Assembly (NCBI RefSeq): GCF_000737315.1
Contig: NZ_JMCB01000007.1
Span: 248,001-312,000, forward strand
Length of the DNA: 64,000 nt
Direction: 5' to 3'
From: Hyalangium minutum
Lineage (GTDB): Bacteria > Myxococcota > Myxococcia > Myxococcales > Myxococcaceae
This document shows, piece after piece, positions 7,283 to 51,834 of this stretch (the stretch's first letter is position 1; each line of letters starts with the position of its first letter). The notes beneath the pieces are model-generated. The model worked only from the letters and a program-made list of their open reading frames with translations, had not been told where the DNA came from and made no database searches. A program made the translations under genes and the position numbers.

Positions 7283-10096
7283 TCAGGCTGTGGTAGGAGG
7301 TTCGGGCGGCGGGCGGGAGATCCAGGCCGCGATGAAGAGGTCCAGGTCGCCGCGCAGCACGTCCTTCACGCGAGGCGTCCCCGCGCCGGTGCGAGGGTCC
7401 TCAACCCTGGCACCGCGGCCCGTGAAGTATCGCCGCACCTCGTCCGTGCTGACGCCCTGGCCGGACACCACACGGGTCGCGATGTCCTTCATCTCGTCCA
7501 TCTCGCCCGCGCCCGTGAGAGTGAGCACGCGGCCCGTGGAGGCATCCTTCACGGTGACTTCGGTGCGTACGCGCTCCAGGAACGTGCCTTCGTGCTTCCT
7601 CACCGGGCGGCCGTCGACCTCCAGGGCCTCTAGGACGCCGGGTGTTCCACCCCGGTGCACGCGGACGTAGGCGCGCTGCCGCTTCTCGTCCTCGATGCGC
7701 CGGTGCATACCCGCCTCGCCTGCGAGGAAGCTGTAGGCGCCCGGTCCCGCGACGCGCACGACGACGCGGGCGGGAGACTCGGCCTCCGCGACGAGCATGG
7801 CCTCGTAGCCGCGCTTCTCCGCCCAGCCGAGGTACATGGTTGCCAGCTCCTGCACCCAGGCGTCCTGGGCCTCCATGGACTCGCTGGCGCAGATATCCAC
7901 CAGCGCCTCATTGTCATTGGCGGAGGCGCCCGAGGCATGGAGCGCCTCGGCCATCTGGACCTCGCGCGCCACGTCTTCGACCTGCTTGGCCGCGGACGCG
8001 AGCTGCATCTCATTCTTGGCCTCGCGCACCAGGCGGCGGGCGAAGGTGGCAGCCTGCTCAAGGCGCTCCAGCTCGTTGATTTGCGCCTCCACCGTTCGGA
8101 ATGCCCGCAGGGTGGCTGCCGCGCGCTCTGGATCATCCCAGAGGTTGGGCGCCTGGGTCTCGGCGAGGAGCTGGTTGCGCCTCTCCTCGAGCTGTGGACG
8201 GTCGGCGGACGCGGACAGTGCCCGGGCGCGGCCGACGAGCCGATCCATTTCGTGCAGCAGCGACTTGCGATCCAGCCGCCGCTTGACGGCTGCGGCCTTC
8301 GACGTGGGCAGAGACAGCTGTGCCGTCGCCTCACGCGGAGGAGAGATCGGTTCGGCAACAGCCATCACCTTGCCGCCAGGGCGAGCCTCCACGCGGACAG
8401 GCGTACCTGGCCGCAGCGGCCGGCGGGCGATCTCCACCGCGAGGGCCGCCGTGAGCGTCTTCTCGATCTCCCGCTGCAGGTAGCGCGCGCCGAACTGCGG
8501 CGAGTAGCCACGGTCCACCAGCAGGTCGACCACCTCGGGCGTGACCTCCACATCGAGGGCGCGGGCGCGGATACCCTCGCGCTCCAGCACGCGGCCCACC
8601 TCGCGCTGGGCGATCTTCCGGATTTCCACCTTCGAGAGCGGCCGGAAGTGGCAGATGGCGTCAAAGCGGTTGAGGAACTCTGGACGGAACGAGTCTGCGA
8701 TGCGCCGGTCGACCTCGGAGACGAGCTCGTCCTCGCGGCGGCTCGCAGCGAAGCCCAGCCCGGACTCCCGGTACACCTCGGCGCCTACGTTGGAGGTGGC
8801 GACAATCAGCGTGTTGTTGCAGGAGACCGTCTCTCCCGCGCCGTTGACGAAGGTGCCCTCATCGAACAGCTGAAGGAACCGGTCGTGCACGCTGCGCGCC
8901 GCCTTCTCGAACTCATCGAGCAGCAGCACGGTGAACACCTTGCCATCGAGCAGGTTGGTCAGCTCTCCGCGCTTGGTTTCCATCGCGGGCGCCCAGGACG
9001 CGCCGAAGGGAACACTCTCGTCGCCGTCGTTGGGGAAGTCCGCCATGTTGAGGCGCACCAGCCTGTCGGCGGAGCCGAAGAGGTACTCCGCGAGCAGCTT
9101 GGCCAGCTGGGTCTTGCCCACGCCCGTGGGGCCCGCGAAGAGGAACACGCCGAGGGGACGGCGCGGATCGTTCAGGCCCGCCTTGAGCAGCGCCACCGAG
9201 CGCAGCACCGCCGACACCGCATCCGTCTGGCCGAGCAGCCGCTCCCCGAAGAAGCGCTCCGTCTCGTCCAGGTCCAGCGGCATCGCATCGTCCACGACGA
9301 AGCGGGGCAGCCGTGTGGCCGCGCAGAAGCGGGTGAGTACGTCCTCGGGCCCCACCCGGTCGCGAGCGGCCCCCGCAGCCTCGGCGGCGGTCTCCTTGAG
9401 GAGCTCGATCGCCTTGCGAGGCATGCGCTGGGCCAGGAGGAACTTGGCCGACAGCCGCAGCGCCACGTCGCACGCGGCCGGGTCGATGGGCAGGTGCATC
9501 TCCCGCTCCAGCTCCTCGGCGACACGGCCGAGGATCCAGCGGGAGCGCTCCAGCGGAGGCTCCTGCAGCGGGATGAGGTGGAGTCGCTCAGCCAGGGCCT
9601 CGTCCGCGCGCAGAAGCTCCTGCACGCGCTTGGGCTCGGTCTCGAAGATGAAGCGGATGCCTCCGGTGCGCAGGGCGCGAATGGCCACGGGCGCCAGCGG
9701 GCCGCCGAGCGCCAGGGGCAGATCCCGGATGTAGACGATGGGGCAGGCGTGGCGGCTCAGGTGGCCGAGCAGCTCTTCGAAGCTCTCGGCGGCCTGACGC
9801 TGGGTGCTGCGCGCCAGGATGTTGGCGGCGGACACCTCCACCAGCCGGGCCTGGGCCACAGCGGCATCCACGCGGCCCTCGGCGATACGACGGGCCACTT
9901 CCTGGACGAGGGCGCTCTTGCCCACGCCCGGCTCGCCCGAGAGCAGAGGGTGCTTGCCGCCTCGAGTGAGCAGGCCCAGCACTTCGGAAACGGCGGCATC
10001 CACGCCATGCGCGGGCGCAAGCTTGCCGTCCCGCGCGAGCGCGGTGAGATCGCGGTCGATGAGTCGCTCGTTGTCCTCGCTCTTCCTCGTCGCCAT
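7283..10096 (-). CDS. Clp/Hsp100-type AAA+ ATPase fused to a C-terminal release-factor-2-like (PCRF) region
   Basis: Walker A GEPGVGKS and GPTGVGKT, second-module Walker B LLLDEFEKA, FRPEFLNRFD, FGARYLQR; C-terminal PNLWDDPERA, MYLGWAEKRGY, AYSFLAGEAGMHRRI, DPRTG, VLRGDLDLFIAAW. Confidence 0.85.
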   Translation of the reverse strand: MATRKSEDNERLIDRDLTALARDGKLAPAHGVDAAVSEVLGLLTRGGKHPLLSGEPGVGKSALVQEVARRIAEGRVDAAVAQARLVEVSAANILARSTQRQAAESFEELLGHLSRHACPIVYIRDLPLALGGPLAPVAIRALRTGGIRFIFETEPKRVQELLRADEALAERLHLIPLQEPPLERSRWILGRVAEELEREMHLPIDPAACDVALRLSAKFLLAQRMPRKAIELLKETAAEAAGAARDRVGPEDVLTRFCAATRLPRFVVDDAMPLDLDETERFFGERLLGQTDAVSAVLRSVALLKAGLNDPRRPLGVFLFAGPTGVGKTQLAKLLAEYLFGSADRLVRLNMADFPNDGDESVPFGASWAPAMETKRGELTNLLDGKVFTVLLLDEFEKAARSVHDRFLQLFDEGTFVNGAGETVSCNNTLIVATSNVGAEVYRESGLGFAASRREDELVSEVDRRIADSFRPEFLNRFDAICHFRPLSKVEIRKIAQREVGRVLEREGIRARALDVEVTPEVVDLLVDRGYSPQFGARYLQREIEKTLTAALAVEIARRPLRPGTPVRVEARPGGKVMAVAEPISPPREATAQLSLPTSKAAAVKRRLDRKSLLHEMDRLVGRARALSASADRPQLEERRNQLLAETQAPNLWDDPERAAATLRAFRTVEAQINELERLEQAATFARRLVREAKNEMQLASAAKQVEDVAREVQMAEALHASGASANDNEALVDICASESMEAQDAWVQELATMYLGWAEKRGYEAMLVAEAESPARVVVRVAGPGAYSFLAGEAGMHRRIEDEKRQRAYVRVHRGGTPGVLEALEVDGRPVRKHEGTFLERVRTEVTVKDASTGRVLTLTGAGEMDEMKDIATRVVSGQGVSTDEVRRYFTGRGARVEDPRTGAGTPRVKDVLRGDLDLFIAAWISRPPPEPPTTA

Positions 10097-10169
10097 GTCT
10101 GAAACGCCCCCGAGGGCGGCACTCTAACCTGCTGAACCGCAGTGGTGAGGGGACAATCCCCAGTCAAGA

Positions 10170-10258
10170 GCGGAAGGCGGAGGACTCGAACCTCAGACCG
10201 GGAGCCGGTCCGCACCCGCTAGCAACGGGGCCTGGTGCCATCACCAGTTCACTCTTCC
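10170..10258 (-). tRNA. tRNA-Ser(GCT)
   Basis: Acceptor GGAAGAG, loop TT-GCT-AG, long variable arm, T loop GTTCGAGTC, G73. Confidence 0.85.
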
Positions 10259-10264
10259 AAAAAA

Positions 10265-10349
10265 GCGGAGCGAGGTGGAGTCGAACCACAGGCCCGTTGG
10301 ACCCTCCTGGGTTCCAGCCAGGTTGCCGGCCGCCCGGCAATCACGCTCC
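10265..10349 (-). tRNA. tRNA-Ser(GGA)
   Basis: CCTGG-CTGGAAC-CCAGG, long variable arm, GTTCGACTC. Confidence 0.85.
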
Positions 10350-10366
10350 AAAACGGCACTGCACAT

Positions 10367-10451
10367 GCGGAAGACAGGGGACTCGAACCCCAAGCGCCGA
10401 GCACTCGCACCGCTTTCGAAACGGGCCACCGGCCTCCGGTGTTGGTCTTCC
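10367..10451 (-). tRNA. tRNA-Ser(CGA)
   Basis: CCGT-TTCGAAA-GCGG, long variable arm, GTTCGAGTC. Confidence 0.85.
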
Positions 10452-10607
10452 AGAAAAGGTGCTGGCAGCTGCGGACCCGCCTGCCAGCGCGCGGGGAGGC
10501 TCTACAGGTGGGGGCCGCCTCTGGCGCACCCCCGCTCCACCTTGTGCTCCGTTCCGGGGCGGAGCGGTGGCGGGGACCACCTCTGGTGACCCCCCATTTC
10601 CCGGGCC

Positions 10608-11150
10608 TCACTCCTCCAGCTCCGTGTGCCAGTAGGCGACATCACGGAGGAACTTCCGCCACGAGACGGGCATGCCCTTCTCGTAGATGAAGGTGAACTG
10701 CAGCGACTCCGGCAGCCGCTTGGGCTTCACCGGCTGCGTGCGCAGCGCCATGCCAGCCTGCGCGGGCGTCCGGTTGCCCTTCTTCTGGTTGCAGGGCACG
10801 CACGCGATCACCACGTTCTCCCAGGTCGTCTTGCCACCCTGGGCGCGGGGAATCACATGGTCGTACGTCGCCTCCGGCCGCGACACCTTCTTATGGCAGT
10901 ATTGGCACTTGCACCCGTCGCGCAGGTACACGTTGTCGCGGCTGAACTTCACGCCGCGGTGCCGCCACCGGAAGAAGCTCACGAACCGAATGATGGACGG
11001 CATCTTCAGCTCGAGAGTGACTGAGCGGACGAAACGGTCCTCGTACTCCTCGACCACCTCGACCTTGCCCTGCCAGATCAACATCATCGCGCGTTGCCAC
11101 GGAACCCGTGCAACGGGCTCGTAGGCCTGGCTCAACACCAGCGTCTCCAT
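10608..11150 (-). CDS. HNH endonuclease (McrA-like) embedded in the tRNA array
   Basis: METLVLSQAY.P, FSRDNVYLRD..KCQYC, TYDHVIPRAQGG, WEN.V.AC..CN..KGN. Confidence 0.9.
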   Translation of the reverse strand: METLVLSQAYEPVARVPWQRAMMLIWQGKVEVVEEYEDRFVRSVTLELKMPSIIRFVSFFRWRHRGVKFSRDNVYLRDGCKCQYCHKKVSRPEATYDHVIPRAQGGKTTWENVVIACVPCNQKKGNRTPAQAGMALRTQPVKPKRLPESLQFTFIYEKGMPVSWRKFLRDVAYWHTELEE

Positions 11151-11171
11151 GACACGGGGCCTTTCGGGAAA

Positions 11172-11246
11172 TGTCCGCGGCGAGGTTCGAACTCGCACGT
11201 GAGCTGGGTTTGAGCCAGCCGCCTCTCCCATTTGGGCCACGCGGAC
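11172..11246 (-). tRNA. tRNA-Leu(CAA), short variable arm
   Basis: GCTGG-CTCAAAC-CCAGC; 5-nt variable region; A73. Confidence 0.8.
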
Positions 11247-11273
11247 GGTTGTTGGGAGCTTCTGAGAAGGAAG

Positions 11274-11349
11274 TACCGCGGGCGGGATTCGAACCCGCAA
11301 CCTCTGCATTCTGAGTGCAGCGCCTCTACCAAGGTTGGGCTACCGCGGC
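11274..11349 (-). tRNA. tRNA-Leu(CAG), short variable arm
   Basis: CTGCA-CTCAGAA-TGCAG; 5-nt variable region; GTTCGAATC. Confidence 0.85.
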
Positions 11350-11363
11350 ATGAAAGGGTGAAG

Positions 11364-11437
11364 TGCCGGAAGAGGGAGTCGAACCCTCACTCGCCAGACT
11401 CTCGAGCTGGTGCCTCTACCTATTGGGCTACTCCGGC
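11364..11437 (-). tRNA. tRNA-Leu(GAG), atypical loop
   Basis: CCAGC-TCGAGAG-TCTGG, C33, short variable region. Confidence 0.65.
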
Positions 11438-11444
11438 ATTTGAG

Positions 11445-11517
11445 TGCACGCCCTGGGGATCGAACCCAGCGAAATCGGTGTGTGGGACCGACGCCGTCTC
11501 CAGCTGGCTCGGCGTGC
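11445..11517 (-). tRNA. tRNA-Val(CAC), atypical loop
   Basis: TCGGT-CCCACAC-ACCGA, C33. Confidence 0.65.
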
Positions 11518-11526
11518 ATGAGAAGT

Positions 11527-11596
11527 TGCGGAGCAGGGAGTCGAACCCTGCAGCCCTGGCGTATGAGACCCGGTGGGGCGTCCGGCCCCTCTCCGC
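11527..11596 (-). tRNA. tRNA-Met(CAT), degenerate
   Basis: Loop CT-CAT-AC, imperfect anticodon stem and short D arm, T loop GTTCGACTC. Confidence 0.55.
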
Positions 11597-11619
11597 ATCA
11601 AAATCAACGTGCTGCTGAG

Positions 11620-11693
11620 TGCCCCTGGCAGGAATTGAACCTGCGGCCTCACGGTTCGGAGCCGTGCACTCTCATCCACTGAGCTACAGGGGC
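11620..11693 (-). tRNA. tRNA-Arg(CCG)
   Basis: CACGG-CTCCGAA-CCGTG; TAGCTCAGTGGATGAGAG D arm. Confidence 0.85.
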
Positions 11694-11703
11694 AAAACTG
11701 AAG

Positions 11704-11777
11704 CGGTCCCGGCAGGACTCGAACCTGCGACCCCACGGCTCGCAACCGTGTGCTCTCATCCACTGAGCTACGGAACC
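11704..11777 (-). tRNA. tRNA-Arg(GCG)
   Basis: CACGG-TTGCGAG-CCGTG; D arm same as neighbouring Arg(CCG). Confidence 0.8.
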
Positions 11778-11792
11778 AAAAAGACAAGGAAG

Positions 11793-11863
11793 TGGACCCG
11801 CCGGGATTCGAACCCGGGTCGCTCGGGTGCAAACCGAGCATTCTCCCGCTGAACTACGGGCCC
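11793..11863 (-). tRNA. tRNA-Ala(TGC)
   Basis: CTCGG-TTTGCAC-CCGAG; G3-U70 present (GGGCCCG/CGGGTCC). Confidence 0.85.
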
Positions 11864-11879
11864 AAAATTCACTGCTGAG

Positions 11880-11951
11880 TGGAGCCGCCGGGGATTGAAC
11901 CCGGGACCTCTCGGATGCGAACCGAGCGCTCTCCCGCTGAGCTACGACCCC
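11880..11951 (-). tRNA. tRNA-Ala(CGC)
   Basis: CTCGG-TTCGCAT-CCGAG; G3-U70 present. Confidence 0.85.
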
Positions 11952-11955
11952 ATGA

Positions 11956-12027
11956 AGCTGCTGGCGGGACTCGAACCCGCATTGTCCTGAGTGGCGCTCA
12001 GGTGCCTCACCTCTCGGCCACGGCAGC
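11956..12027 (-). tRNA. tRNA-Gly(GCC), atypical loop
   Basis: CCTGA-GCGCCAC-TCAGG, U73, G32/C33. Confidence 0.7.
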
Positions 12028-12050
12028 AAAACCTACGTCGGTACTTCGAG

Positions 12051-12123
12051 AGCCCTCGGCCGGAATCGAACCGGCGACACCCTGTTTACGAAACAGGTGC
12101 TCTGCCTACTGAGCTACAAGGGC
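12051..12123 (-). tRNA. tRNA-Thr(CGT)
   Basis: CCTGT-TTCGTAA-ACAGG. Confidence 0.85.
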
Positions 12124-12126
12124 AAA

Positions 12127-12196
12127 TGGCAGGCCGCCAAGGAGTTGAACCCTGCTGCTCGGATTTGGAGCCCAAGCTGCTCCCGGAGCGCGACCC
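12127..12196 (-). tRNA. tRNA-Trp(CCA), short D arm, encoded 3' CCA
   Basis: Loop CT-CCA-AA, G73 followed by CCA. Confidence 0.65.
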
Positions 12197-12216
12197 ATCA
12201 ACCAGTGAAGAAGAAG

Positions 12217-12289
12217 TGCCGTCTCCTGGAATTGAACCAGGTCCTCCTGCTTTTCAGACAGGCGCGCGAACCATCTACGCCAAGGCGGC
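12217..12289 (-). tRNA. tRNA-Phe(GAA)
   Basis: CCTGT-CTGAAAA-GCAGG. Confidence 0.8.
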
Positions 12290-12306
12290 AAAACATCGAC
12301 TGCGAG

Positions 12307-12377
12307 CGCTCCTGCAGGGAATCGAACCCTGTTCACGTGGTAGACGGCCACGCCGCGATCCAATCGCGTCCAAGAGC
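12307..12377 (-). tRNA. tRNA-Asp(GTC), atypical loop
   Basis: CGTGG-CCGTCTA-CCACG, G73, C33 and U37. Confidence 0.65.
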
Positions 12378-12400
12378 AAGGGAAGGGTGCTTCACTTCAG

Positions 12401-12472
12401 TCGGGGCACCTGGACTCGAACCAGGATTGCTCGCGTATCAGACGAGAGTCTTTGCCTTTGGACCATACCCCG
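12401..12472 (-). tRNA. tRNA-Ile(GAT)
   Basis: CTCGT-CTGATAC-GCGAG. Confidence 0.75.
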
Positions 12473-12493
12473 AAGTGCTACAAGTGTTACAAG

Positions 12494-12567
12494 TCTGGGT
12501 GGCAGGACTTGAACCTGCGACCTCACGGATCCGAACCGTGCGCTCTACCAAGCTGAGCCACACCCAG
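12494..12567 (-). tRNA. tRNA-Pro(CGG)
   Basis: C1-G72, CACGG-TTCGGAT-CCGTG. Confidence 0.85.
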
Positions 12568-12576
12568 ATAAACAAG

Positions 12577-12652
12577 TCGGGATGACTGGATTCGAACCAG
12601 CGGCCTCACGCACCCCAAGCGTGCGCTCTCATCCAAGCTGAGCTACATCCCG
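12577..12652 (-). tRNA. tRNA-Pro(GGG)
   Basis: C1-G72, CACGC-TTGGGGT-GCGTG. Confidence 0.85.
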
Positions 12653-12669
12653 ATGAAACATGCTGCGAG

Positions 12670-12742
12670 CGCCTCGTGCGGGAGTCGAACCCGCCTTTCC
12701 ACATTGAGAGTGTGGCGGCCTAAACCGATAGCCGAACGAGGC
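12670..12742 (-). tRNA. tRNA-Glu(CTC)
   Basis: CCACA-CTCTCAA-TGTGG, G73. Confidence 0.8.
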
Positions 12743-12755
12743 AAAAAGACTGGAG

Positions 12756-12826
12756 AGGCTTGTGCGGGAGTTGAACCCGCCACCAGACGGTTTTGCAGAC
12801 CGCCGCCGCCCCGGGCGGAACAAGCC
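12756..12826 (-). tRNA. tRNA-Cys(GCA)
   Basis: GCGGT-CTGCAAA-ACCGT, U73. Confidence 0.75.
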
Positions 12827-12832
12827 AAGATG

Positions 12833-12905
12833 CTCGGAGGGAGGGACTCGAACCCTCAACCCCGCGGTTAACAGCCGCGTGCTCTGCCAGTTGAGCTACC
12901 TCCGA
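12833..12905 (-). tRNA. tRNA-Asn(GTT)
   Basis: U1-A72, CGCGG-CTGTTAA-CCGCG, G73. Confidence 0.9.
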
Positions 12906-12917
12906 ATACTGCTTCAG

Positions 12918-12989
12918 CGCCGAGAGAAGGATTCGAACCTTCGTTTACGGGTTCAGAGCCCGCCGCCCTGCCAATTGGACCATCTCGGC
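12918..12989 (-). tRNA. tRNA-Gln(CTG)
   Basis: GCGGG-CTCTGAA-CCCGT, G73. Confidence 0.8.
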
Positions 12990-13004
12990 ATACCGACAAG
13001 GTGA

Positions 13005-13075
13005 AGCGGGTGACGGGACTCGAACCCGTGTCACTGGCTTGGGACGCCAGAGTCTTGCCACTAGACGACACCCGC
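13005..13075 (-). tRNA. tRNA-Gly(CCC)
   Basis: CTGGC-GTCCCAA-GCCAG, U73, GCGGGTG acceptor. Confidence 0.8.
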
Positions 13076-13087
13076 GTGTGCTGCGAG

Positions 13088-13158
13088 TACCCCCGGAGGG
13101 AATCGAACCCTCACCGTCCGCTTAAGAGGCGGATGCTCGACCAATGAGCTACGGAGGC
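13088..13158 (-). tRNA. tRNA-Lys(CTT)
   Basis: TCCGC-CTCTTAA-GCGGA. Confidence 0.85.
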
Positions 13159-13204
13159 GTTTGACCGCCCCCGTGCAAGCGGGCGGACGAACTTCACCAC
13201 TGCG

Positions 13205-13223
13205 ATTCAGTTGTCAGAGAACA
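13205..13223 (-). promoter_or_regulatory. rrn-type boxA antitermination-like element
   Basis: Minus strand TGTTCTCTGACAACTGAAT resembles rRNA-operon boxA context (GTTCTTTGAAAACTGAA), in the first array spacer. Confidence 0.5.
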
Positions 13224-13256
13224 AGGGACTGCCTTGGAACTGCTCACACTGCTGAG

Positions 13257-13342
13257 TGGGGATGCTGAGAGTTGAACTCAGTGGGCCGTCGAGCGGCTCC
13301 GGAGTTACAAGCCGGTGCGTCTCCGTAACGCGCTACATCCCC
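13257..13342 (-). tRNA. tRNA-Tyr(GTA), first gene of the array
   Basis: GGGGATG/CATCCCC acceptor, loop TT-GTA-AC with a mismatch closing the stem, long variable arm, A73. Confidence 0.7.
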
Positions 13343-13353
13343 AGGAAGTGATG

Positions 13354-13425
13354 CGAGGTGATGCTTTGAAAACAGCGAGGCCGGGTTCCCCTTCGGGAGC
13401 CCGGCCTCTGTGCGACGTCACCTCG
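13354..13425 (-). other. Nested stem-loop immediately 5' of the first tRNA (terminator/attenuator or processing hairpin)
   Basis: Inner hairpin 13377-13408 GAGGCCGGGCTCCC-GAAG-GGGAACCCGGCCTC followed by GCTGTTTT; outer pair CGAGGTGA/TCACCTCG. Confidence 0.55.
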
Positions 13426-13447: not shown

Positions 13448-13600
13448 TCAGAAGCCGGGTAGTCTGTTCCAGTACCACTGGGATTCGACCGAGAAAACCG
13501 GAGCGGTGACCAGACTGGGACGCGGGAGCGAATCGATGCAACCGGCAAAGTTGTCAGTGTGCTTGGGGTTCATCGCGCTCTGCAGCGTCACCGTTGTCAT
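13448..13600 (-). CDS. Putative 50-aa leader peptide of the tRNA operon
   Basis: SD GAAAGGAG 8 nt before ATG; MTTVTLQSAMNPKHTDNFAGCIDSLPRPSLVTAPVFSVESQWYWNRLPGF*. Confidence 0.5.
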   Translation of the reverse strand: MTTVTLQSAMNPKHTDNFAGCIDSLPRPSLVTAPVFSVESQWYWNRLPGF

Positions 13601-13626
13601 GGTCACCGCTCCTTTCAGCGAGAAAA

Positions 13627-13651
13627 GACGCGGCAATAAATGCTTCCTGAC
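13627..13651 (-). promoter_or_regulatory. Candidate ECF-sigma promoter 1 (tRNA operon)
   Basis: GTCAGGAA-N13-CGTC. Confidence 0.7.
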
Positions 13652-13787
13652 GCGCACGTGGATTTTCCACGCGCCCATCAGGCTCGAGTTCTTTTGCTGG
13701 CTTCTTTAAAGCGCTCAGCCAGCTTTATTAAGGAAGGGAATCTGTCTTCCTTTCGATGCCGAGCTGCGTGCCGAGGCCCAGGGCGGG

Positions 13788-13829
13788 AAAAAGAAAAAGG
13801 CCCCGGAGCACGAAGCTCCGAGGCCTTTT
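13788..13829 (-). terminator. Intrinsic terminator after the small Ubl-like gene
   Basis: AAAAGGCCTCGGAGC-TTCG-TGCTCCGGGGCC followed by TTTTTCTTTTT. Confidence 0.85.
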
Positions 13830-14149
13830 CATGTACCGATACTGGGCGCCGCCGACTCCAGATTCTCCGCCGTACCGCACCAGCTTCCCTGCTTCGCTGG
13901 GGCGCCGAACGGGACCTTCGGCCGCAGGTAGATGCGATCCTCGCCGCGTGCCCCACGGAAGCGGTCCACGACGTAGTTCTGGAAGGCATCGTCGCGAAGG
14001 TGGACCAGGTGCATGCCCGGCACGCCGCCGGAGCGCACGACTTCCACCGCGATGCGCCGCACGTCTGCGTCCGACACGTGCCCGTCCAACTCCACCGGCA
14101 CGTCGGCGGACATCCCGTCATAGGTGATGTTGAGCGTCGTCATCGCCAT
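13829..14149 (-). CDS. Small conserved-looking hypothetical protein, possibly ThiS/MoaD/ubiquitin-like
   Basis: SD AAAGGA; TLNITYDGMSADVPV...NYVVDRF...RIYLRPKVPFG pattern of alternating beta-strands and one helix; fold is a guess. Confidence 0.6.
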   Translation of the reverse strand: MAMTTLNITYDGMSADVPVELDGHVSDADVRRIAVEVVRSGGVPGMHLVHLRDDAFQNYVVDRFRGARGEDRIYLRPKVPFGAPAKQGSWCGTAENLESAAPSIGT

Positions 14150-14203
14150 CACATCCTTTCACTTGGAGCGGACCGCGAGTCGCGGCCGGTCCAGGTGGCC
14201 TGG

Positions 14204-24970: not shown

Positions 24971-27295
24971 GTGAATCCGCACGAAGCCGCCCTGCTCGAA
25001 GACCTGAACCCGCCTCAGAAGGAGGCCGTCCTCCATGGGGACGGTCCGCTGCTCGTCCTGTCGGGGGCCGGCAGTGGCAAGACGCGCGTCATTACTCGCC
25101 GCGTCGCCCACCTGGTGACGGTCCGCCGCGTGTTCCCCTGGCGCATCCTCGCCGTCACCTTCACCAACAAGGCCGCCCGCGAGATGCGCGAGCGTCTGAC
25201 ACAGCTGCTCGGCGCTCAGGCCCATGAGCTCGTGGTCAGCACGTTCCACTCGTCCGCCGCCATGATTCTCCGCCGCGAGGCCGAGGCCGTGGGCCTGACT
25301 CGCAGCTTCGTCATCTATGACGATGGGGATCAGCTCGGGCTCGTGAAGCGCGCCATGCGCGATGCCCGCGTGGAGCCGCTGCTGCAGCCGCGCGAGATTC
25401 TCCACCGCATCGATCAGGAGAAGAACGCCGCCCGCCTGCCCGAGGACATGCAGGTGGACATCGACGACATACGCGGCATGGTGGTGAAGAAGACGTATCA
25501 GGCCTATCAGCGCCTGCTGCGCGCCGCCAACGCCGTGGACTTTGGCGATCTGCTCCTGCTGCTGGTGACCCTGTTCCGCAAGCGGCCGGATGTGCTGGCC
25601 AAGTACCGGCAGCGCTTCTCTCATGTGCTCGTGGACGAGTTCCAAGACACCAACCCTGTCCAGTATGAGCTGCTGCGCCTGCTAGCGCCTCCGCCGGGCG
25701 CCAACCTCGTGGTGGTGGGCGATGATGACCAGTCCATCTACCGGTGGCGCGGCGCCAGCGTGGACAACATCCTCGGCTTCCCTCAGCAGTACCCGGGGGC
25801 CCGGGTCGTCAAGCTGGAGCAGAACTACCGCTCGGACAAGAACATCCTCGAGGCCGCGCACGCCGTCATCTCTCACAACCGGCGGCGCATGCCCAAGAAG
25901 CTCTGGAGCGAGCGGCCCCCGGGCGCGAACCTCGATCTGCTCATCAACCGCGATGAGCGCGCCGAGGCCCAGGAGGTCGCCCGGCGCGTTCTGGCGCTCC
26001 AGCGCGAGGGCTTCATCAAGTACTCCAGCATGGCCGTCTTCTACAGGGCCAACGCGCAGAGCCGCGTGCTCGAAGAGGCCATGCGCCTGGCCCGTGTGCC
26101 GTACACCCTGGTCAGTGGCCGCAGCTTCTATGACCGCGCCGAGGTTCGCGATGCCGCCGCGTATCTGCGCCTCATGGTCAACCCGCGCTCGGATGCGGAC
26201 CTGCTGCGCGTCATCAACACCCCGGCCCGTGGCATCGGCGACACCACCGTGGAGCGGCTCTCCGACTACGCCGATGCTCAGGGCATCAGCCTGTATGAGG
26301 CCATCGAGCGGCCGGAGAAGATTCCCGCGCTCAATGCGGCGGCCGCGCGGCGGCTGGGTGGGTTTCATGTGCTGGTGTCTTCCCTGAACGCGTTTGCCCA
26401 GAAGGCCCAGGATGCCGCGGGCGCCGTGGACGAGATGTTGAAGGAGACCAAGCTCGTCGAGTCCCTCATGGCCGAGGGCAGCGATGAGTCCATCACTCGC
26501 GCGGAGAACCTTCGCGAGTTCTTGGGCGCGGCGCAGGAGTTCGACCTGAACCGTGCGGCTGCTGCCGTGGCTGCCGCAGCGGCTCAGCCCGCAGAGGGCG
26601 CCGAGCCTCCGCCTCCCGAACTGGATGCGGCTCCGCTTACCGCGGATGTGCCTCCGCTTCAGGCGTTCCTGGAGCAGATCAGTCTGGTCGGTGAGGCGGA
26701 TGCGGAGGTGGGGGAGGGCCGGGTGGCGCTCATGACGCTGCATGCCGCCAAGGGCCTGGAGTTCGATGCTGTGTTCCTCACCGGCATGGAGGACGGGGTC
26801 TTCCCGCACTCGCGCTCGCTGGCCGTCGAGGATCCCGAGGACAGTGAGGAGATGGCCGAGGAGCGGCGCCTCTGCTACGTGGGCTTTACCCGTGCTCGAA
26901 AGCGGCTGTTCATCAGTTTCGCGCAGTGCCGCTCTCTCTTCGGTGAGCTTCGCTACAACCCGCCCTCTCGCTTCCTGCGGGACGTGCCGCAAGGACTCTT
27001 CGGCATCGAGCAGGAGGTTCAGGAAGCCCCGCGTCCCATGCCCTCGGCTGTGGCTCCGCGCCGCCGCTCGTATGACGAGGACGATGGGCCGCGCGTGGAT
27101 CGCTCCTACTCGCAGGCCGCCGATGGCGAGGGGATGGGCGGGGACGTGCGGGGCATGCGCGTGCGCCACGAGCAGTTCGGTGTGGGCCGCATCATCTCCG
27201 CCGACGGCTCGGGCCCCAATGCGAAGGTGACGGTCGAGTTCGGCGGTGGCGTGGGCCTCAAGCGTGTCATCGCCCGGTTCCTCATGCCGGGCTGA
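24971..27295 (+). CDS. uvrD: ATP-dependent DNA helicase UvrD/PcrA
   Basis: GAGSGKT, TFTNKAA, VDEFQDTN, VVGDDDQSIYRWRGA, LEQNYRS, TLHAAKGLEF, EERRLCYVGFTRA, C-terminal Tudor-like VRHEQFG.G. Confidence 0.95.
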   Translation: MNPHEAALLEDLNPPQKEAVLHGDGPLLVLSGAGSGKTRVITRRVAHLVTVRRVFPWRILAVTFTNKAAREMRERLTQLLGAQAHELVVSTFHSSAAMILRREAEAVGLTRSFVIYDDGDQLGLVKRAMRDARVEPLLQPREILHRIDQEKNAARLPEDMQVDIDDIRGMVVKKTYQAYQRLLRAANAVDFGDLLLLLVTLFRKRPDVLAKYRQRFSHVLVDEFQDTNPVQYELLRLLAPPPGANLVVVGDDDQSIYRWRGASVDNILGFPQQYPGARVVKLEQNYRSDKNILEAAHAVISHNRRRMPKKLWSERPPGANLDLLINRDERAEAQEVARRVLALQREGFIKYSSMAVFYRANAQSRVLEEAMRLARVPYTLVSGRSFYDRAEVRDAAAYLRLMVNPRSDADLLRVINTPARGIGDTTVERLSDYADAQGISLYEAIERPEKIPALNAAAARRLGGFHVLVSSLNAFAQKAQDAAGAVDEMLKETKLVESLMAEGSDESITRAENLREFLGAAQEFDLNRAAAAVAAAAAQPAEGAEPPPPELDAAPLTADVPPLQAFLEQISLVGEADAEVGEGRVALMTLHAAKGLEFDAVFLTGMEDGVFPHSRSLAVEDPEDSEEMAEERRLCYVGFTRARKRLFISFAQCRSLFGELRYNPPSRFLRDVPQGLFGIEQEVQEAPRPMPSAVAPRRRSYDEDDGPRVDRSYSQAADGEGMGGDVRGMRVRHEQFGVGRIISADGSGPNAKVTVEFGGGVGLKRVIARFLMPG

Positions 27296-33514: not shown

Positions 33515-36500
33515 GTGTCAGCTACCTCTAAGACTAGGCTAGAAGCGATTGCGAAATTTGTCATTACCTCAGCGTTGCTGTGGCTCGCGTGCGGCGAGGT
33601 GCCGCAGGGCGAGAACGGAGCGGTGCACCACGAGTGGCTCGTACCCAAGGAGCTCCAGGCCGCAAGCAATGAGCCGTGGAAAGCCACGGGCGCTCTGGCC
33701 AACGTACGATATGCCCACAATGCGACGGTGTTATCCAACGGCCAAGTGCTGGTCACTGGAGGCGTTGGCTCAAGCGACGTTCTCGCCAGTGCGGAGGTGT
33801 ACGATCCGGCCACGGGAACGTGGAACCCTACAGTCTCTCTGGCCACGGCGCGTTGGTTCCACACGACGACACTGCTGCCTAACGGCCAAGTGCTGGCCAC
33901 TGGAGGCAGTGGCTCAAGCGGCGCTCTCGCCAGTGCAGAGGTGTACGATCCGGCTACGGGGACCTGGAGTACCTCTGGCTCTCTAACTGTGGCACGCCGG
34001 TACCACACAGCGACGCTGTTGCCCAATGGCCAAGTGCTGGTCACCGGTGGTTTTGGCTCAGGCGGCTACCTCGCAAGTGTGGAGGTGTATGATCCGGCAA
34101 CGCAAGCCTGGAGTACCACTGGTGCTATGGCCAGTACACGCTATCTCCACACGGCGACGCTGTTGCCCAATGGCCAAGTGCTGGTCACCGGTGGTTTTGG
34201 CCCAACCGGAGCTCTCGCTAGCGCGGAGATGTACGATCCGGTCACAGGGGCCTGGAGTACCACTGGCGCTATGGCCAGAGCACGCTATCTCCACACGGCG
34301 ACACTGTTGCCCAATGGCCAAGTGCTGGTCACTGGGGGCCGTGATTCAAGCGGCGCTCTCGCCAGTGCAGAAGTGTACGATCCGGCCACGGGGATCTGGA
34401 GTACCTCTGGCTCTCTAACTGTGGCACGCCGGTACCACACAGCGACGCTGTTGCCCAATGGCCAAGTGTTGGTCACCGGTGGTTTTGGCTCAGGCGGCTA
34501 CCTCGCAAGTGTGGAGGTGTATGATCCGGCAACGCAAGCCTGGAGTACCACTGGCGCTATGGCCAGGGCACGCGAGTACCACACGGCAACGCCGTTGCCC
34601 TCCGGCCAAGTGCTGGTCACTGGTGGCAACGGCCCAGGCGGCCCGCGCGCTAGTACGGAGGTGTACGATCCGACCACGGGGACCTGGAGTACCACTGGCG
34701 CTATGGCCAGTACACGCAATTACCACACGGCAACGCTGTTGCCCAATGGCCAAGTGCTGGTCACCGGTGGTTTTGGCCCAACCGGAGCTCTCGCTAGCGC
34801 GGAGGTGTACGATCCGGTCACAGGGGCCTGGAGTACCACTGGCGCTATGACCGTAGCTCGCGAATACCACACAGCGACACTATTGCCTAACGGCAAAGTG
34901 CTGGTCACCGGCGGCTTTGGCTCAAGCGGCTACCTCGCAAGTGCAGAGGTGTACGATCCGGTCACGGGGACCTGGAGCACCACCAGCGCTATGGCCAGTA
35001 CACGCATGAGACATACGGCGACACTGTTGCCCAATGGCCAAGTGCTGGTCTCAGGCGGCGCTCTCGCAAGTGCAGAGGTGTACGATCCTGTCACGCGAGC
35101 CTGGAGTACCACTGGTGCTATGGCCAGGGCACGCGAGTACCACACGGCGACGCCGTTGCCCTCCGGCCAAGTGCTAGTCACTGGTGGCAACGGCCCAGAC
35201 GGCCCGCACGCTAGTGCAGAGGTGTACGATCCGACCACGGGGACCTGGAGTACCACTGGCGCTATGGCCAGGGCACGTGAAAATCACACGGCAACGCTGT
35301 TGTCCAATGGCCAAGTATTGGTCACCGGTGGCTTTGGCCTAACCGGCTCGCTCGCTAGCGCGGAGGAGTACAATCCGGTCACAGGGGCGTGGAGTACTAC
35401 TCGCCCGCTGGCCGTGGCACGCAGGGACCACACGGCGACGCTGTTGCCCAATGGCCAAGTGCTGGTCACCGGCGGCTTTGGTCTGGACGAGGAACTCGCC
35501 AGCGCAGAAGTGTATGACCAAGAAACAAAGGGGTGGAGCCGGACAGGCCCTCTAGCCATGGCACGCGAGTACCACACTGCGACGCTGTTGCCCAATGGCC
35601 AAGTGCTAGTCACCGGTGGTTTTGGCTGGGCCGGTCATCTCGCCAGCGCGGAGTTGTACTACGACCCCATCGCACCGGTTGCTCCGGTAGTGACCATCTC
35701 AGGCAACGGCTCGATGACCAATGACAACACTCCTACCTTCAGCGGCTTGGCGGAAGCGATTAGTACCGTCACCATCCTCGTGGATGACACTCCCCTGGGC
35801 GCCACTAAGGCGAATATGGCAGGCCACTGGACCTTCACTCCTACCGTGAAACTGGCCGATGGGGGGCACACTGTAAGGGCGCGGGCCACAGATGGAGGGG
35901 GCAACACGAGCGCCGACTCGACCACCAACACTTTTACGGTGGATGCCACTCCTCCACCTCCTCCAGTAATTGCCAAACCGGCCAATGGAGCGCGAACCAA
36001 TAACAACCAACTGGCTTATAGCGGGACGACGGAAGCGGACAGCACCGTCACTATCATTGTGGATGGAATTCCAGTGGGCACCACCACAGTTGATGCAGCG
36101 GGCAACTGGAGTTTCACTCTATCCATGCCGTTGGCCGATGGACCGCACACAGTAATGGCGCGGGCCGCAGATGCATTGGGCAACACGAGCGCCGACTCAA
36201 ACACCATCACTCTCACGGTGGACACCACGCCTCCGCTTGCTCCGGCGGTTGACACCCCAGTCAATGGATCGCAAACCAATAACAACCATATGACTTATGG
36301 CGGGACGGCTGAGGCGGGCATCTCCGTCACTGTCATAGTAGACGGGATTGAGGTGGGCGCCACGACGACCAACGCCTTTGGGGTGTGGCATGTCGCGCCC
36401 CCTGCGACCTTGGCGGGTGGCAGTCACACGGTAAGGGCGCGGGGTACAGATGGAGGGGGAAACACGAGTGCAGACTCAAATACTAATACCTTTACGGTGG

Positions 36501-51597: not shown

Positions 51598-51834
51598 CGG
51601 CGGAGCCCGGTACTCTGTTGGATGGGTGGAACCTGCGATCGGCTGCTTCTCACGGGGTGAGAAGTCTTCATCCGGTCGCATCTTGCGGGTGTGGAGAGGG
51701 CCAGCGGGGACGGTGGCGCCCACCTACCCAGCGCGTTACCACCACGCCAGAGGAACGGGTGCCACCCCGTGGCTTCTCCTCTTCCTCGGAGCCGCCCTCT
51801 AACGTTCCGTGCTCCTGGCCAGAAGGAGCCATCC

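Follow-up and report, generated by a model that had tools for sequence, protein, structure and literature searches.

Gene content of the array

The window, a stretch of 64,000 nucleotides from the chromosome of Hyalangium minutum DSM 14724, contains a block of about 3.2 kb on the minus strand (10171-13342) that is made up of 27 tRNA genes and one HNH endonuclease gene. Its parts are as follows.

13256..13342, minus strand: tRNA-Tyr(GTA), class II, A73 (ARAGORN, Rfam)
11172..13158, minus strand: run of 23 tRNA genes, Lys(CTT) to Leu(CAA) (ARAGORN, Rfam, covariation)
Run members 1-8: Lys(CTT), Gly(CCC), Gln(CTG), Asn(GTT), Cys(GCA), Glu(CTC), Pro(GGG), Pro(CGG)
Run members 9-16: Ile(GAT), Asp(GTC), Phe(GAA), Trp(CCA), Thr(CGT), Gly(GCC), Ala(CGC), Ala(TGC)
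Run members 17-23: Arg(GCG), Arg(CCG), Met(CAT), Val(CAC), Leu(GAG), Leu(CAG), Leu(CAA)
12196..12130 (corrected), minus strand: tRNA-Trp(CCA), about 67-68 nt, mini D arm
10608..11150, minus strand: HNH_5 endonuclease, 180 aa, embedded in the array (Pfam)
10368..10451, minus strand: tRNA-Ser(CGA), class II, G73 (relaxed ARAGORN, Rfam clan model)
10266..10349 (5' end corrected), minus strand: tRNA-Ser(GGA), class II, G73
10171..10258 (corrected), minus strand: tRNA-Ser(GCT), class II, G73, two mismatches at the base of the acceptor stem

With default settings, ARAGORN reports 26 tRNA genes for 10170-13342, each of them on the minus strand. The 27th, tRNA-Ser(CGA), emerges once the threshold is slightly relaxed and is also picked up by the Rfam clan model; all 7 bp of its acceptor stem are paired, position 73 is G and the variable arm is long. 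For three genes, Trp, Ser(GGA) and Ser(GCT), ARAGORN misplaced the 5' end, and the coordinates were corrected. ARAGORN also called a 28th gene, a plus-strand 'Met' (26701-26782), but this falls within the ORF of a UvrD/PcrA helicase and was rejected as spurious. The Rfam tRNA gathering score is reached by 19 of the 27 genes, the other eight being non-canonical yet conserved.

An earlier sequence-only reading of this DNA had listed 27 tRNA genes serving 19 amino acids, with no anticodon repeated, no His gene and an HNH gene between the three Leu and the three Ser genes. ARAGORN recovers exactly the same succession and these counts, and the HNH ORF (11150..10608) matches Pfam HNH_5/HNH with an E value of 1.8e-17. 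With 27 different anticodons the set is non-redundant, as had been proposed, and is not the product of local duplication. The short spacers that had been described are found through most of the block (4-27 nt); the two exceptions are 98 nt after Tyr and a 720-nt gap between Leu(CAA) and Ser(CGA), which houses the HNH gene. CCA is encoded by Trp only.

tRNA structure and identity elements

In each isoacceptor family, 5-17 stem pairs have changed compensatorily and canonical pairing is kept at 91-100%. The odd 68-nt fold of Trp is 97.8% paired, with both sides changed in 10 of 22 pairs, a level that 0 of 500 shuffles reach. Among Hyalangium arrays the tRNA bodies are 84% identical, compared with 55% for the spacers. 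Identity elements are also in place: both Ala tRNAs have G3:U70, both Pro tRNAs have C1:G72 and A73, U73 is found in Gly and Cys, G73 in Asn, Gln, Glu, Asp, Trp and Ser, and A73 in Leu, Val, Ile, Phe, Lys, Tyr and Met. The three tRNA-Leu are of a conserved but unusual shape, 74-76 nt long with a 5-nt variable loop in place of the long variable arm, and they retain A73, A14/A15, G18G19 and U48; these are the elements that LeuRS of E. coli requires, the long arm being dispensable (PMC9976931). The tRNAs of the array are thus not pseudogenes, compensatory evolution being found in every family and the identity elements being the right ones. Some members may nevertheless be poor or non-translational, since tRNA-Asp carries C33 and U37 and tRNA-Val carries G8.

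Match to host codon usage

The first base of the anticodon is G or C in 26 of the 27 genes, and the host has a GC3 of 0.89; the anticodon set is tuned to the G/C-ending codons of the host. With standard wobble rules applied to the window's genes, the array covers 83% of codon usage, and the most-used codon of 19 of the 20 amino acids is among the codons read. The same rules leave the array with no reader for the His codon CAC or for the major codons ACC, GUC and GCC. To call the block a near-complete second decoding set, as the sequence-only reading had done, is therefore an overstatement.

Upstream region

Four further features precede the array.

13646..13652, minus strand: conserved box, CGTCAGG here and TGTCAGG in relatives (alignment of 21 Myxococcaceae loci)
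13607..13616, minus strand: ribosome-binding site of a leader ORF, GAAAGGAGCG, identical in 21/21 aligned sequences
13448..13600, minus strand: leader ORF, 50 codons and a UGA stop
13378..13408, minus strand: near-invariant GC-rich hairpin of 13 bp, GAGGCCGGGCTCCC-loop-GGGAACCCGGCCTC, followed by a T-rich tract

The TGTCAGG block is invariant in the relatives of the 21-locus alignment, lies about 50 nt ahead of the leader ATG, and, in almost every one of the 40 loci with the AAA-PCRF neighbour described below, precedes the hairpin by about 250 nt. It may serve as a promoter or operator; a search upstream of the array gave no match to the sigma-70 consensus. The leader ORF varies little in length (50-52 codons) and its stop stays in place, but there is little conservation of the peptide, which has no family match in NCBIfam or PHROGs. 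The hairpin is 100% paired in 23 sequences, almost without variation, and occurs once in the window. It ends 35 nt before tRNA-Tyr, and since the distance to the first tRNA is merely 24-35 nt across all loci there is no room for a second promoter. It persists upstream of the HNH gene even in arrays that have shrunk to 0-2 tRNAs. A scan of 42 more distant chromosomal HNH loci (L042-L083) found neither leader nor hairpin.

The end of the leader ORF, including its stop codon, is complementary to the 5' arm of the hairpin (86.6% paired, versus 27-57% in slid controls), and covariation in this antiterminator pairing is not significant, 78 of 500 shuffles reaching it. We propose that the hairpin is an attenuator or terminator that is read through when the array is transcribed, and the leader ORF and hairpin together weakly suggest attenuation control. 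Because it is invariant, the hairpin could equally be a protein-binding or processing site.

The locus in Myxococcaceae

The array occupies a shared locus, with the order hyp107, array-HNH-Ser, AAA-PCRF, RNase J, YajQ and RimO, which recurs in Hyalangium, Myxococcus, Pyxidicoccus, Corallococcus and Citreicoccus. By this synteny the array has been inherited vertically at one fixed chromosomal locus across the Myxococcaceae. In Myxococcus and Pyxidicoccus it has shrunk to 5-20 genes, Corallococcus retains 1-2, and some genomes have none, so that in evolutionary terms the array can be dispensed with. In the arrays of sister Hyalangium, His(GTG) is present between Ile and Asp, so the absence of His is a recent deletion in the H. 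minutum strain, which has also lost Arg(CCT).

The downstream neighbour is the following gene.

7283..10096, minus strand: AAA-PCRF, 937 aa (Pfam, PDB matches)

This protein joins a double AAA+ (ClpA/B/C-like) ATPase to RF2-like domains 1-2, with neither SPF nor GGQ. Its gene is preceded by its own conserved TAGAGT box and, at about 85% identity, accompanies HNH in synteny in 40 loci of the Myxococcaceae; homologues were found only in Myxococcales, and the gene is absent from the viral array loci examined. The window also contains an AHH-nuclease toxin-like gene. PADLOC linked no tRNase or defence system to the locus. Over about 20 kb in either direction from the array, neither integrase nor phage structural genes occur. 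The earlier remark that no such genes flank it is correct over that distance, yet misleading, as array and HNH together form a phage-type module.

The HNH gene points to the relationships of that module. phrog_16726 spans residues 1-144 of its product, which shows 40% identity (E 2e-30) to the HNH adjoining the trn operon on Anabaena pCC7120delta. Among phage homologues, identity is 46% for Myxococcus phage Mx1 and 52% for Rctr197k, rising to 60-63% for HNHs encoded on viral IMG/VR contigs of 100-210 kb from large uncultured phages. The gene always lies directly after a tRNA-Leu(CAA). It is the one protein-coding gene with a consistent association to arrays, whether of cyanobacteria, mycobacteria or phages, and its product is the hallmark of L-arrays. 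With dN/dS values of 0.06-0.29 and an intact ORF in 13 of 13 checked, it is under purifying selection.

Relation to known tRNA arrays

A tRNA array unit has been defined as at least 20 tRNA genes at a density of at least 2 per kb (Tran et al. 2016, PMC4758250), and the Hyalangium block falls within this definition; that survey makes no mention of Myxococcus, Deltaproteobacteria, Stigmatella or Hyalangium. By its gene content and homology the block belongs to the known class of tRNA array units, or L-arrays with an HNH gene, which large phages and plasmids spread, and objects with 26-27 tRNAs for 19-20 amino acids and one embedded HNH are already known from mycobacteria and cyanobacteria.

Arrays of large phages share with it the order Arg-Arg-(Arg)-Met-Val-Leu-Leu-Leu(CAA), HNH, Ser-Ser-Ser, and their HNHs, at 46-63% identity, are the nearest found outside the chromosomes of Myxococcota; in one phage locus (L092) the micro-synteny around HNH is identical to that of the Hyalangium block. 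They differ in having up to 41 genes, U34 isoacceptors among them, in encoding CCA in 37% of genes, and in that their tRNA-Leu are mostly class II (80-86 nt), whereas those of Hyalangium lack the long arm. In Myxococcus phage Mx1 just two Leu tRNAs are left beside HNH.

The trn operon on plasmid delta of Anabaena/Nostoc sp. PCC 7120 likewise consists of some 26 tRNA genes in one orientation, closely spaced and without periodicity, its genes do not encode CCA (as in Hyalangium, Trp excepted), and RNA- or translation-related genes lie nearby in both organisms. Both arrays have tRNA-Leu of 74-78 nt with a D arm of the form GTAGCCCAAT.GG.AGAGGC and no long variable arm. The Anabaena array is AT-rich and its anticodons are mostly U34, in contrast to the G/C34 of the Hyalangium array in its GC-rich host. 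HNH lies upstream of the array in Anabaena and inside it in Hyalangium, and cyanobacterial L-arrays, that of Anabaena included, are plasmid-borne and patchy, while the Hyalangium array is chromosomal and passed down vertically throughout the family. The putative control by leader ORF and hairpin would also differ from that of Anabaena, where 9-nt direct repeats overlap the promoter and the repressor TrcR is reported to act on the array (PMC10272220). Expression and charging are established for Anabaena, where 23 of 26 array tRNAs are charged in vivo and the tRNAs are polysome-associated (PMC8421152, Santamaria-Gomez et al., NAR 2021). The Anabaena array is induced by ribosome-targeting antibiotics and aids survival (PMC8421152), but its deletion did not stop the recovery of protein synthesis (PMC8421152), so that the phenotype is modest even in this model.

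Compared by description, mycobacterial tRNA array units (Morgado & Vicente 2018, PMC5966550; Yano et al. 2026, PMC12803027) have 26-27 tRNA genes for 19-20 amino acids and a single embedded HNH, and their tRNAs have D, anticodon and variable arms unlike those of housekeeping tRNAs (PMC12803027). Some are accompanied by genes for release-factor-domain proteins, Pth or tmRNA, much as the Hyalangium neighbour is an RF2-like fusion. They reside on giant linear plasmids, prophages and varied chromosomal sites and are clearly mobile, in contrast to the fixed Hyalangium locus. The ICE-borne arrays of Acidithiobacillus also ride recognisable mobile elements, unlike the Hyalangium block.

Origin and possible function

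We consider it probable that this L-array descends from arrays of large phages, was acquired by an ancestor of the Myxococcaceae and fixed in the chromosome, and now serves as an auxiliary tRNA pool in times of stress. A narrower version of this explanation, rather than an exclusive alternative, is that the array supplies substitute tRNAs whose divergent structures escape anticodon nucleases or other tRNases and restore decoding once the housekeeping tRNAs have been cut, the tRNases coming from competitors' myxobacterial polymorphic toxins or being activated in phage infection. The phage origin of the module agrees with this, as does the use of C34/G34 instead of the modified U34/I34 that known anticodon nucleases use (Lys CUU not UUU, and Arg GCG in place of the ACG of the phage array); mycobacterial arrays are treated as putative anti-defence elements (PMC12803027), and the AHH-nuclease toxin-like gene could be counted in its favour. 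We nevertheless regard this version as possible rather than likely, as GC-rich codon usage explains the G/C34 bias equally well, the odd structures might reflect relaxed constraint on low-use tRNAs, and the PADLOC result links no tRNase to the locus.

It is unlikely that the block is a cryptic, decaying leftover of a phage or plasmid that inserted long ago, with little or no transcription, undergoing slow deletion and of no present benefit. The patchiness between genera (0 to 27 genes), the recent loss of His and Arg(CCT), the eight tRNAs under the Rfam threshold and the long-held view of L-arrays elsewhere as cryptic would all be expected of such a relic; the losses, however, are clean deletions and not in-place decay, the remaining genes keep their cloverleaf through compensatory substitutions over genus-level divergence, and tRNA bodies far more conserved than spacers, a constrained and intact HNH, an anticodon set that fits host codon usage and a conserved upstream region all speak against it. 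Still less probable is a selfish cassette, in which a homing HNH endonuclease copies itself and adjoining tRNA genes into empty sites, as does SegB of phage T4, so that host benefit is irrelevant. The constant tie of HNH to arrays and its invariable place after tRNA-Leu(CAA) would suit such an element, but the module is confined within Myxococcaceae to one chromosomal locus, with one copy seen per locus, and HNH is kept under the same low dN/dS even where the tRNAs are gone. That this is a Firmicutes-style cluster of the organism's main tRNA genes is scarcely credible: 19 amino acids, one gene per anticodon and coverage of the best-used codons give that impression, but His and readers for ACC, GUC and GCC are missing, sister genera manage with 0-2 of these genes, the shapes are non-canonical, CCA is unencoded except in Trp, and the closest relatives of the block are phage arrays.

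Under the phage-derived auxiliary pool that we favour, transcription would begin at the conserved upstream element, pass the translated leader of about 50 codons and the strong hairpin, and continue through all tRNAs and the HNH gene as one precursor. The tRNAs would be freed by RNase P and 3' nucleases, CCA would be attached enzymatically, since only Trp encodes it, and host synthetases would charge the products, their identity elements being intact. The set is presumably redundant with the housekeeping tRNAs of the genome, and homology to the Anabaena trn operon (PMC8421152) is consistent with the backup role that the sequence-only reading had assigned to it, an interpretation that as a whole is partly supported. 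An auxiliary tRNA pool fitted to the host's G/C-ending codons would then support protein synthesis whenever the ribosome or the housekeeping pool is impaired, for instance, on the precedent of the Anabaena operon, under translation inhibitors, tRNA-cleaving toxins or phage attack.

Composition of the array and its class

With default settings ARAGORN found 26 tRNA genes on the minus strand, running from 13342 to 10170, and a 27th gene, the third tRNA-Ser, was recovered at a slightly relaxed threshold. The 27-gene array, in the order proposed by the sequence-only reading, is thereby borne out. Its 27 genes have 27 distinct anticodons and serve 19 amino acids, His being absent, and 19 of the 27 tRNAs pass the Rfam tRNA gathering score. 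An additional ARAGORN call, an 82-nt 'tRNA-Met' on the plus strand at 26701-26782, is spurious, as it lies inside a UvrD/PcrA helicase ORF (24971-27295) and is without Rfam support. The features of the array and its downstream neighbour are as follows.

7283-10096, minus strand: AAA-PCRF, 937 aa, double AAA+ ATPase of the Clp/Hsp100 type (ClpA/B/C-like) with RF2-like domains 1-2 (residues ~620-802)
10100-10170, minus strand, and orthologous loci: conserved element GGGATTG...CTCACC...GGTTAGAGTGC...GGGGGCG, upstream of the AAA-PCRF start codon
10451..10368, minus strand: tRNA-Ser(CGA), the 27th gene, matching the Rfam clan model; its acceptor stem is perfect, its variable arm is long, and it has G73
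11150..10608, minus strand: HNH_5/HNH endonuclease gene between Leu(CAA) and Ser(CGA)
11172-11437, minus strand: arm-less tRNA-Leu genes (also in the comparison loci L084, 4326-4862; L087, 6908-7883; and L094, 7732-7883)
11703-11777, minus strand: tRNA-Arg(GCG), occupying the site of Arg(ACG) in phage arrays and in one sister array
12130-12196, minus strand: tRNA-Trp (with counterparts at, for example, L024, 9910-9978, and L027, 9909-9980)

A tRNA array unit has been defined as a region that holds no fewer than 20 tRNA genes, packed at 2 or more per kb (Tran et al. 2016, PMC4758250); here 27 tRNA genes occupy 3172 bp, a length that takes in the HNH gene, which makes 8.5 per kb. The class of L-arrays is characterized by co-orientation and a spacing tight enough for co-transcription, by a non-periodic order and frequently, though not obligatorily, by a linked HNH gene. 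In the window every gene of the array is on the minus strand, the 27 different anticodons follow an order that never repeats, HNH_5 is present at 10608-11150, and the spacers measure 4-27 nt save for the HNH-containing gap and the 98 nt after Tyr. The Tyr-Lys spacer (13159-13255, minus strand) contains an element of about 60 nt consisting of TCTCTGACAACTGAATCGCAGTGGTGAAG followed by a hairpin, TCCGCCCGC-TTGCA-CGGGGGCGG. This element is conserved within the Hyalangium group only, at 79% identity versus 20-60% for other spacers, and could be an internal promoter or processing site.

L-arrays have also been described as supernumerary, foreign in origin and horizontally spread, sprinkled in their distribution, and present in phage and plasmid copies (Santamaria-Gomez et al. 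2021, PMC8421152). Cyanobacterial L-arrays carry a conserved HNH (PMC8421152), while mycobacterial array units comprise 26-27 tRNAs for 19-20 amino acids with one embedded HNH (PMC5966550, PMC12803027), and both published descriptions are a close fit to the block in the window. The sequence-only reading had overlooked this literature on HNH-bearing arrays in cyanobacteria and mycobacteria. We conclude that the block truly belongs to the known L-array / tRNA array unit class and is maintained by selection. The searchable literature, which does not extend to the supplementary tables of the NAR 2021 survey, holds no report of myxobacterial tRNA arrays, and within that scope this array is the first of its class in the Myxococcota.

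Authenticity of the array tRNAs

In order to compare the array with its relatives we fetched 80 genomic loci using the HNH protein as an anchor. Across loci, compensatory double changes affect 5-17 stem pairs in each isoacceptor family, and 91-100% of the pairing is canonical; the ARAGORN-based collection favours foldable tRNA copies, but these copies are nonetheless positional orthologues. Among the Hyalangium arrays the tRNA bodies are 84% identical versus 55% for the spacers. Identity elements are also in place: both tRNA-Ala carry G3:U70, both tRNA-Pro carry C1:G72 with A73, Gly(CCC) has U73 with G1-C2-G3, and Cys has U73. The array tRNAs for Asn, Gln, Glu, Asp, Trp and Ser have G73, and the remaining isoacceptors have A73, with the exceptions of Thr (U73) and Arg(GCG) (G73). 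A reading of the block as pseudo-tRNAs is set aside by these compensatory changes, body and spacer identities and identity elements, and the genes are real.

Within the array only tRNA-Trp encodes CCA, whereas in related phage arrays CCA is encoded in 37% of the genes, at the 3'-trailer position. Between 10170 and 13342 (minus strand) N73 is instead followed by C at +1 (85%) and U at +2 (81%), giving a C-U(C/U) pattern in which CTCGCAGCA and CTCAGCAG recur as trailer motifs. This C-U(C/U) trailer after the discriminator may be a 3'-processing signal.

Unusual tRNA architecture

The three tRNA-Leu of the window are only 74-76 nt long, with a variable loop of 5 nt. This short arm-less form is found in 66 of 66 Leu(GAG/CAG/CAA) genes of myxobacterial arrays, and also in the Anabaena operon (four Leu) and in phage Mx1, so that arm-less tRNA-Leu of 73-78 nt is common to myxobacterial, cyanobacterial-plasmid and phage arrays. 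In most related phage arrays, however, tRNA-Leu is still class II (80-86 nt), and a single phage contig combines the two forms (83, 74 and 74 nt); the arm-less form is accordingly a derived state that arose inside the array lineage. The D arm is of the Leu type (GTAGCCCAAT.GGTAGAGGC; conserved as GTAGCCCAA..GG.AGAGGC), and U48 and A73 are kept. According to a 2023 review, LeuRS of E. coli needs A73, A15-U48, G18G19 and A20a, and the long arm is dispensable (PMC9976931). The same review states that the long arm of tRNA-Leu is found in all organisms but animal mitochondria, with which the bacterial and phage arm-less tRNA-Leu contrasts (PMC9976931); the literature that we searched contains no report of arm-less tRNA-Leu in arrays.

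The tRNA-Trp is 67-68 nt long and has a 4-bp D stem abutting the acceptor stem and a 3-nt YGG loop. Its fold is 97.8% paired, with 10 of 22 pairs changed on both sides and no equal among 500 shuffles, and it is the one array tRNA retained next to HNH in Corallococcus. Conserved across genera are a single connector nucleotide in Met and Cys, G8 in Val and U37 in Asp, the latter with an additional C33 in Hyalangium. Where tRNA-Arg(GCG) takes the place of Arg(ACG), the A34-to-G change would make TadA deamination to inosine unnecessary. The covariation identifies these oddly shaped tRNAs as selected structures, not decay products, and their occurrence in several phyla has a bearing on tRNA recognition by synthetases, by modification enzymes and by toxins that target tRNA.

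Decoding capacity

The first base of the anticodon is G in 12 array tRNAs, C in 14 and U in one. In a sample of 13,812 codons from the genes of the window (GC3 0.89), and assuming standard wobble, the array anticodons read 83% of codons and cover the most-used codon for 19 of 20 amino acids, leaving gaps at CAC/CAU (His), GCC, ACC and GUC. The sequence-only reading had proposed a near-complete, non-redundant backup set, and while the 27 distinct anticodons uphold its non-redundancy, these gaps show that completeness was overstated. In contrast to this G/C34 repertoire, the array of AT-rich Anabaena has mostly U34. The anticodons thus track host composition. This speaks for decoding as a target of selection; it speaks against a full 'second set' and also against a simple relic. 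Since the array has no readers for His, ACC, GUC and GCC, and since sister genera are viable with 0-2 array genes, we infer that it adds to a complete dispersed housekeeping set.

Relatives, phage relationship and gene loss

The number of array tRNA genes is 21-27 in Hyalangium, 13-20 in Pyxidicoccus and some Myxococcus, 5-9 in M. xanthus-like strains, and 1-2 (Tyr and/or Trp) in Corallococcus, with some genomes having none. In more distant Myxococcota MAGs the arrays linked to an HNH gene reach 37 genes and have no AAA-PCRF neighbour. In sister Hyalangium arrays His(GTG) lies between Ile and Asp and Arg(CCT) follows Arg(CCG), whereas the window has only spacers of 23 nt and 22 nt at these sites. 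As the sisters carry both genes and bare spacers remain in the window, these losses are recent and strain-specific. Within the Myxococcaceae the distribution fits vertical descent and loss at one locus.

Outside the Myxococcota, an HNH gene lies beside the 26-gene trn operon on plasmid delta of Anabaena/Nostoc PCC 7120, and the HNH of the window is 40% identical to it (E 2e-30). In Myxococcus phage Mx1 two short tRNA-Leu flank an HNH to which identity is 46%; it is 52% for phage Rctr197k and 60-63% for the HNHs that IMG/VR viral contigs of 100-210 kb carry along with 11-41 tRNA genes. On one viral contig (L092) the genes to the left of HNH are ...Arg(ACG) Arg(CCG) Arg(CCT) Met Val(CAC) Leu(GAG) Leu(CAG) Leu(CAA), and those to the right are Ser(TGA) Ser(CGA) Ser(GGA) Ser(GCT), an order around HNH that matches that of the window gene for gene. 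This order and the viral HNH identities therefore make the block a phage-type array module. A whole-array search of plasmid DNA gave no syntenic array; the hits were isolated ones, to individual tRNAs and the HNH gene. Judged from the homology of arrays on phages and plasmids, a foreign origin of the array is supported.

The window has a GC content of ~68%; it matches contig JMCB01000007.1 of assembly GCA_000737315.1 with full identity, and JMCB00000000 belongs to the myxobacterium Hyalangium minutum DSM 14724T. Downstream on the same strand are AAA-PCRF, RNase J, YajQ, a hypothetical protein and RimO; upstream are the 107-aa hypothetical protein hyp107, an esterase with a CBM20 domain, endonuclease V, a VWA protein, a metallophosphatase and ECF sigma factors. 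Over ~20 kb on either side of the array there is no integrase, no transposase and no phage structural gene. The sequence-only reading was therefore correct that the flanks lack phage genes, but it missed the phage relationship of the array and HNH themselves, which is evident from HNH identities of 46-63% and the order shared with L092. The array is phage-type, domesticated at a fixed chromosomal site and trimmed differently between genera.

Elsewhere in the window are two giant surface-type proteins, one of 1214 aa with Kelch repeats and Big_13/Big_6 domains in a lower-GC stretch (33515-37159, plus strand; GC 0.60-0.62) and one of 2044 aa with tandem Big_9, cadherin-like and PKD repeats (40144-46278, minus strand). 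A 502-aa protein (51691-53199, plus strand) ends in an AHH nuclease domain, a member of the HNH/EndoVII superfamily of the kind typically seen in polymorphic toxins.

The HNH gene and the AAA-PCRF neighbour

The HNH gene is intact and of equal length in all 13 orthologues checked, with a dN/dS of 0.06-0.29, and its product matches a phage HNH family over its whole length. It is retained even in loci without tRNAs, and because it persists where the tRNAs are gone it is not a decaying homing endonuclease. A Septu pair (PtuA ATPase with PtuB HNH) was considered and rejected, as PtuB models match the HNH core only, at 17-36 bits, and the neighbouring ATPase is a Clp-type AAA+; in PADLOC no defence system fits the array locus.

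AAA-PCRF has neither the SPF codon-recognition motif nor the GGQ motif. It is ~85% identical across Myxococcaceae genera and has homologues only in Myxococcales, and no literature on such a fusion was found. A possible role for this protein might be that of a ribosome-directed unfoldase. Mycobacterial arrays are accompanied by release-factor-domain, Pth and tmRNA genes (PMC5966550, PMC12803027), which makes its adjacency to the array suggestive. AAA-PCRF is, however, absent from 42 more distant chromosomal HNH loci (L042-L083) and from all phage loci, and, being confined to Myxococcales, it is rejected as a companion of arrays outside the Myxococcaceae. It is also preceded by its own conserved TAGAGT box, invariant and ~35 nt before the ATG, and the element at 10100-10170 is probably its own promoter and 5' UTR. 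Because AAA-PCRF does not travel with arrays elsewhere and has this box, we abandoned the view that leader, tRNAs, HNH and AAA-PCRF make up a single obligatory operon, and treat the gene as a conserved neighbour of the array. Two MAG contigs with distant AAA-PCRF homologues (L085 and L086) both end at the 5' part of the gene, perhaps because assembly stopped at a tRNA array that lies upstream and resembles a repeat.

The proposed upstream control region

Myxococcaceae loci have four common elements between the hyp107 terminator and tRNA-Tyr:

Upstream box, minus strand: TGTCAGG, invariant; CGTCAGG in the window
Leader ribosome binding site, minus strand: GAAAGGAGCG, invariant
13448..13600, minus strand: leader ORF, 50 codons in the window and 50-52 across the loci
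13378..13408, minus strand: hairpin with a near-invariant 13-bp GC stem and a T-rich tail

The leader ORF keeps its frame, its length and the position of its UGA stop, while the peptide is poorly conserved. The hairpin lies 35-43 nt past the leader stop and 24-35 nt before the first tRNA, which leaves no space for a promoter of the array's own in between; its transcription must therefore run through the hairpin. A search around the array gave no sigma-70 promoter, and the hairpin was ruled out as a dispersed repeat. In every species the last leader codons and the stop codon are able to pair with the 5' arm of the hairpin. The alternative (antiterminator) pairing reaches 86.6% versus 27-57% in slid controls, although its covariation is not significant, and the U-tract of the hairpin is weak in Corallococcus. 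The conserved leader and hairpin suggest regulated read-through of the array. We tentatively propose, at somewhat less than even chances, that the region is a leader-peptide attenuator in which a ribosome at the stop codon favours the terminator; alternatively, the hairpin could be a protein-binding or processing site.

Corallococcus keeps the box and hairpin immediately upstream of Trp and HNH, and one genome without detectable tRNA has them as well. A scan of the 42 more distant chromosomal HNH loci (L042-L083) did not find them, and the putative control region accordingly looks specific to the chromosomal lineage, not inherited with the array. The leader peptide and the hypothetical proteins hyp107 and hyp369 match no Pfam, NCBIfam or PHROG family. 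The hyp107 gene (13829-14152, minus strand) precedes the leader closely and keeps its synteny among Myxococcaceae, and it has a weak homologue in phage Rctr197k (L088, 511-738; 35% over 79 aa) ~6 kb from HNH. It may be part of the imported module.

Biological meaning

L-arrays have been described as silent in standard conditions, and in Anabaena the array tRNAs are induced by translational stress, charged (23 of 26) and found on polysomes (Santamaria-Gomez et al. 2021, PMC8421152). By analogy, the myxobacterial array is most likely a conditionally expressed auxiliary tRNA pool, for which candidate stresses are antibiotic-type ribosome inhibition, tRNA-cleaving toxins or phage attack. The backup-set interpretation was right in spirit, its faults being the overstated completeness and the missed phage relationship and literature. 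It is also conceivable, but improbable, that the array tRNAs form a separate 'alternative-architecture' lineage of phages, cyanobacteria and myxobacteria (arm-less Leu, 68-nt Trp, compensatory evolution), wired in Myxococcaceae to a ribosome-speed-sensing leader-ORF/hairpin attenuator, perhaps with AAA-PCRF. If so, the array would be a nuclease-resistant, modification-light decoding set that comes on at the very time when normal translation breaks down.

Although long tRNA arrays are widespread, a single cyanobacterium has provided essentially all tests of their function. The leader and hairpin provide a concrete regulatory hypothesis coupling the auxiliary tRNA set of the Myxococcaceae to translational stress. 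In this family the array has been kept at one chromosomal locus through the whole radiation, and the natural series of variants with 0-27 genes in genetically tractable relatives, such as Myxococcus xanthus, could serve to test what such arrays are for.
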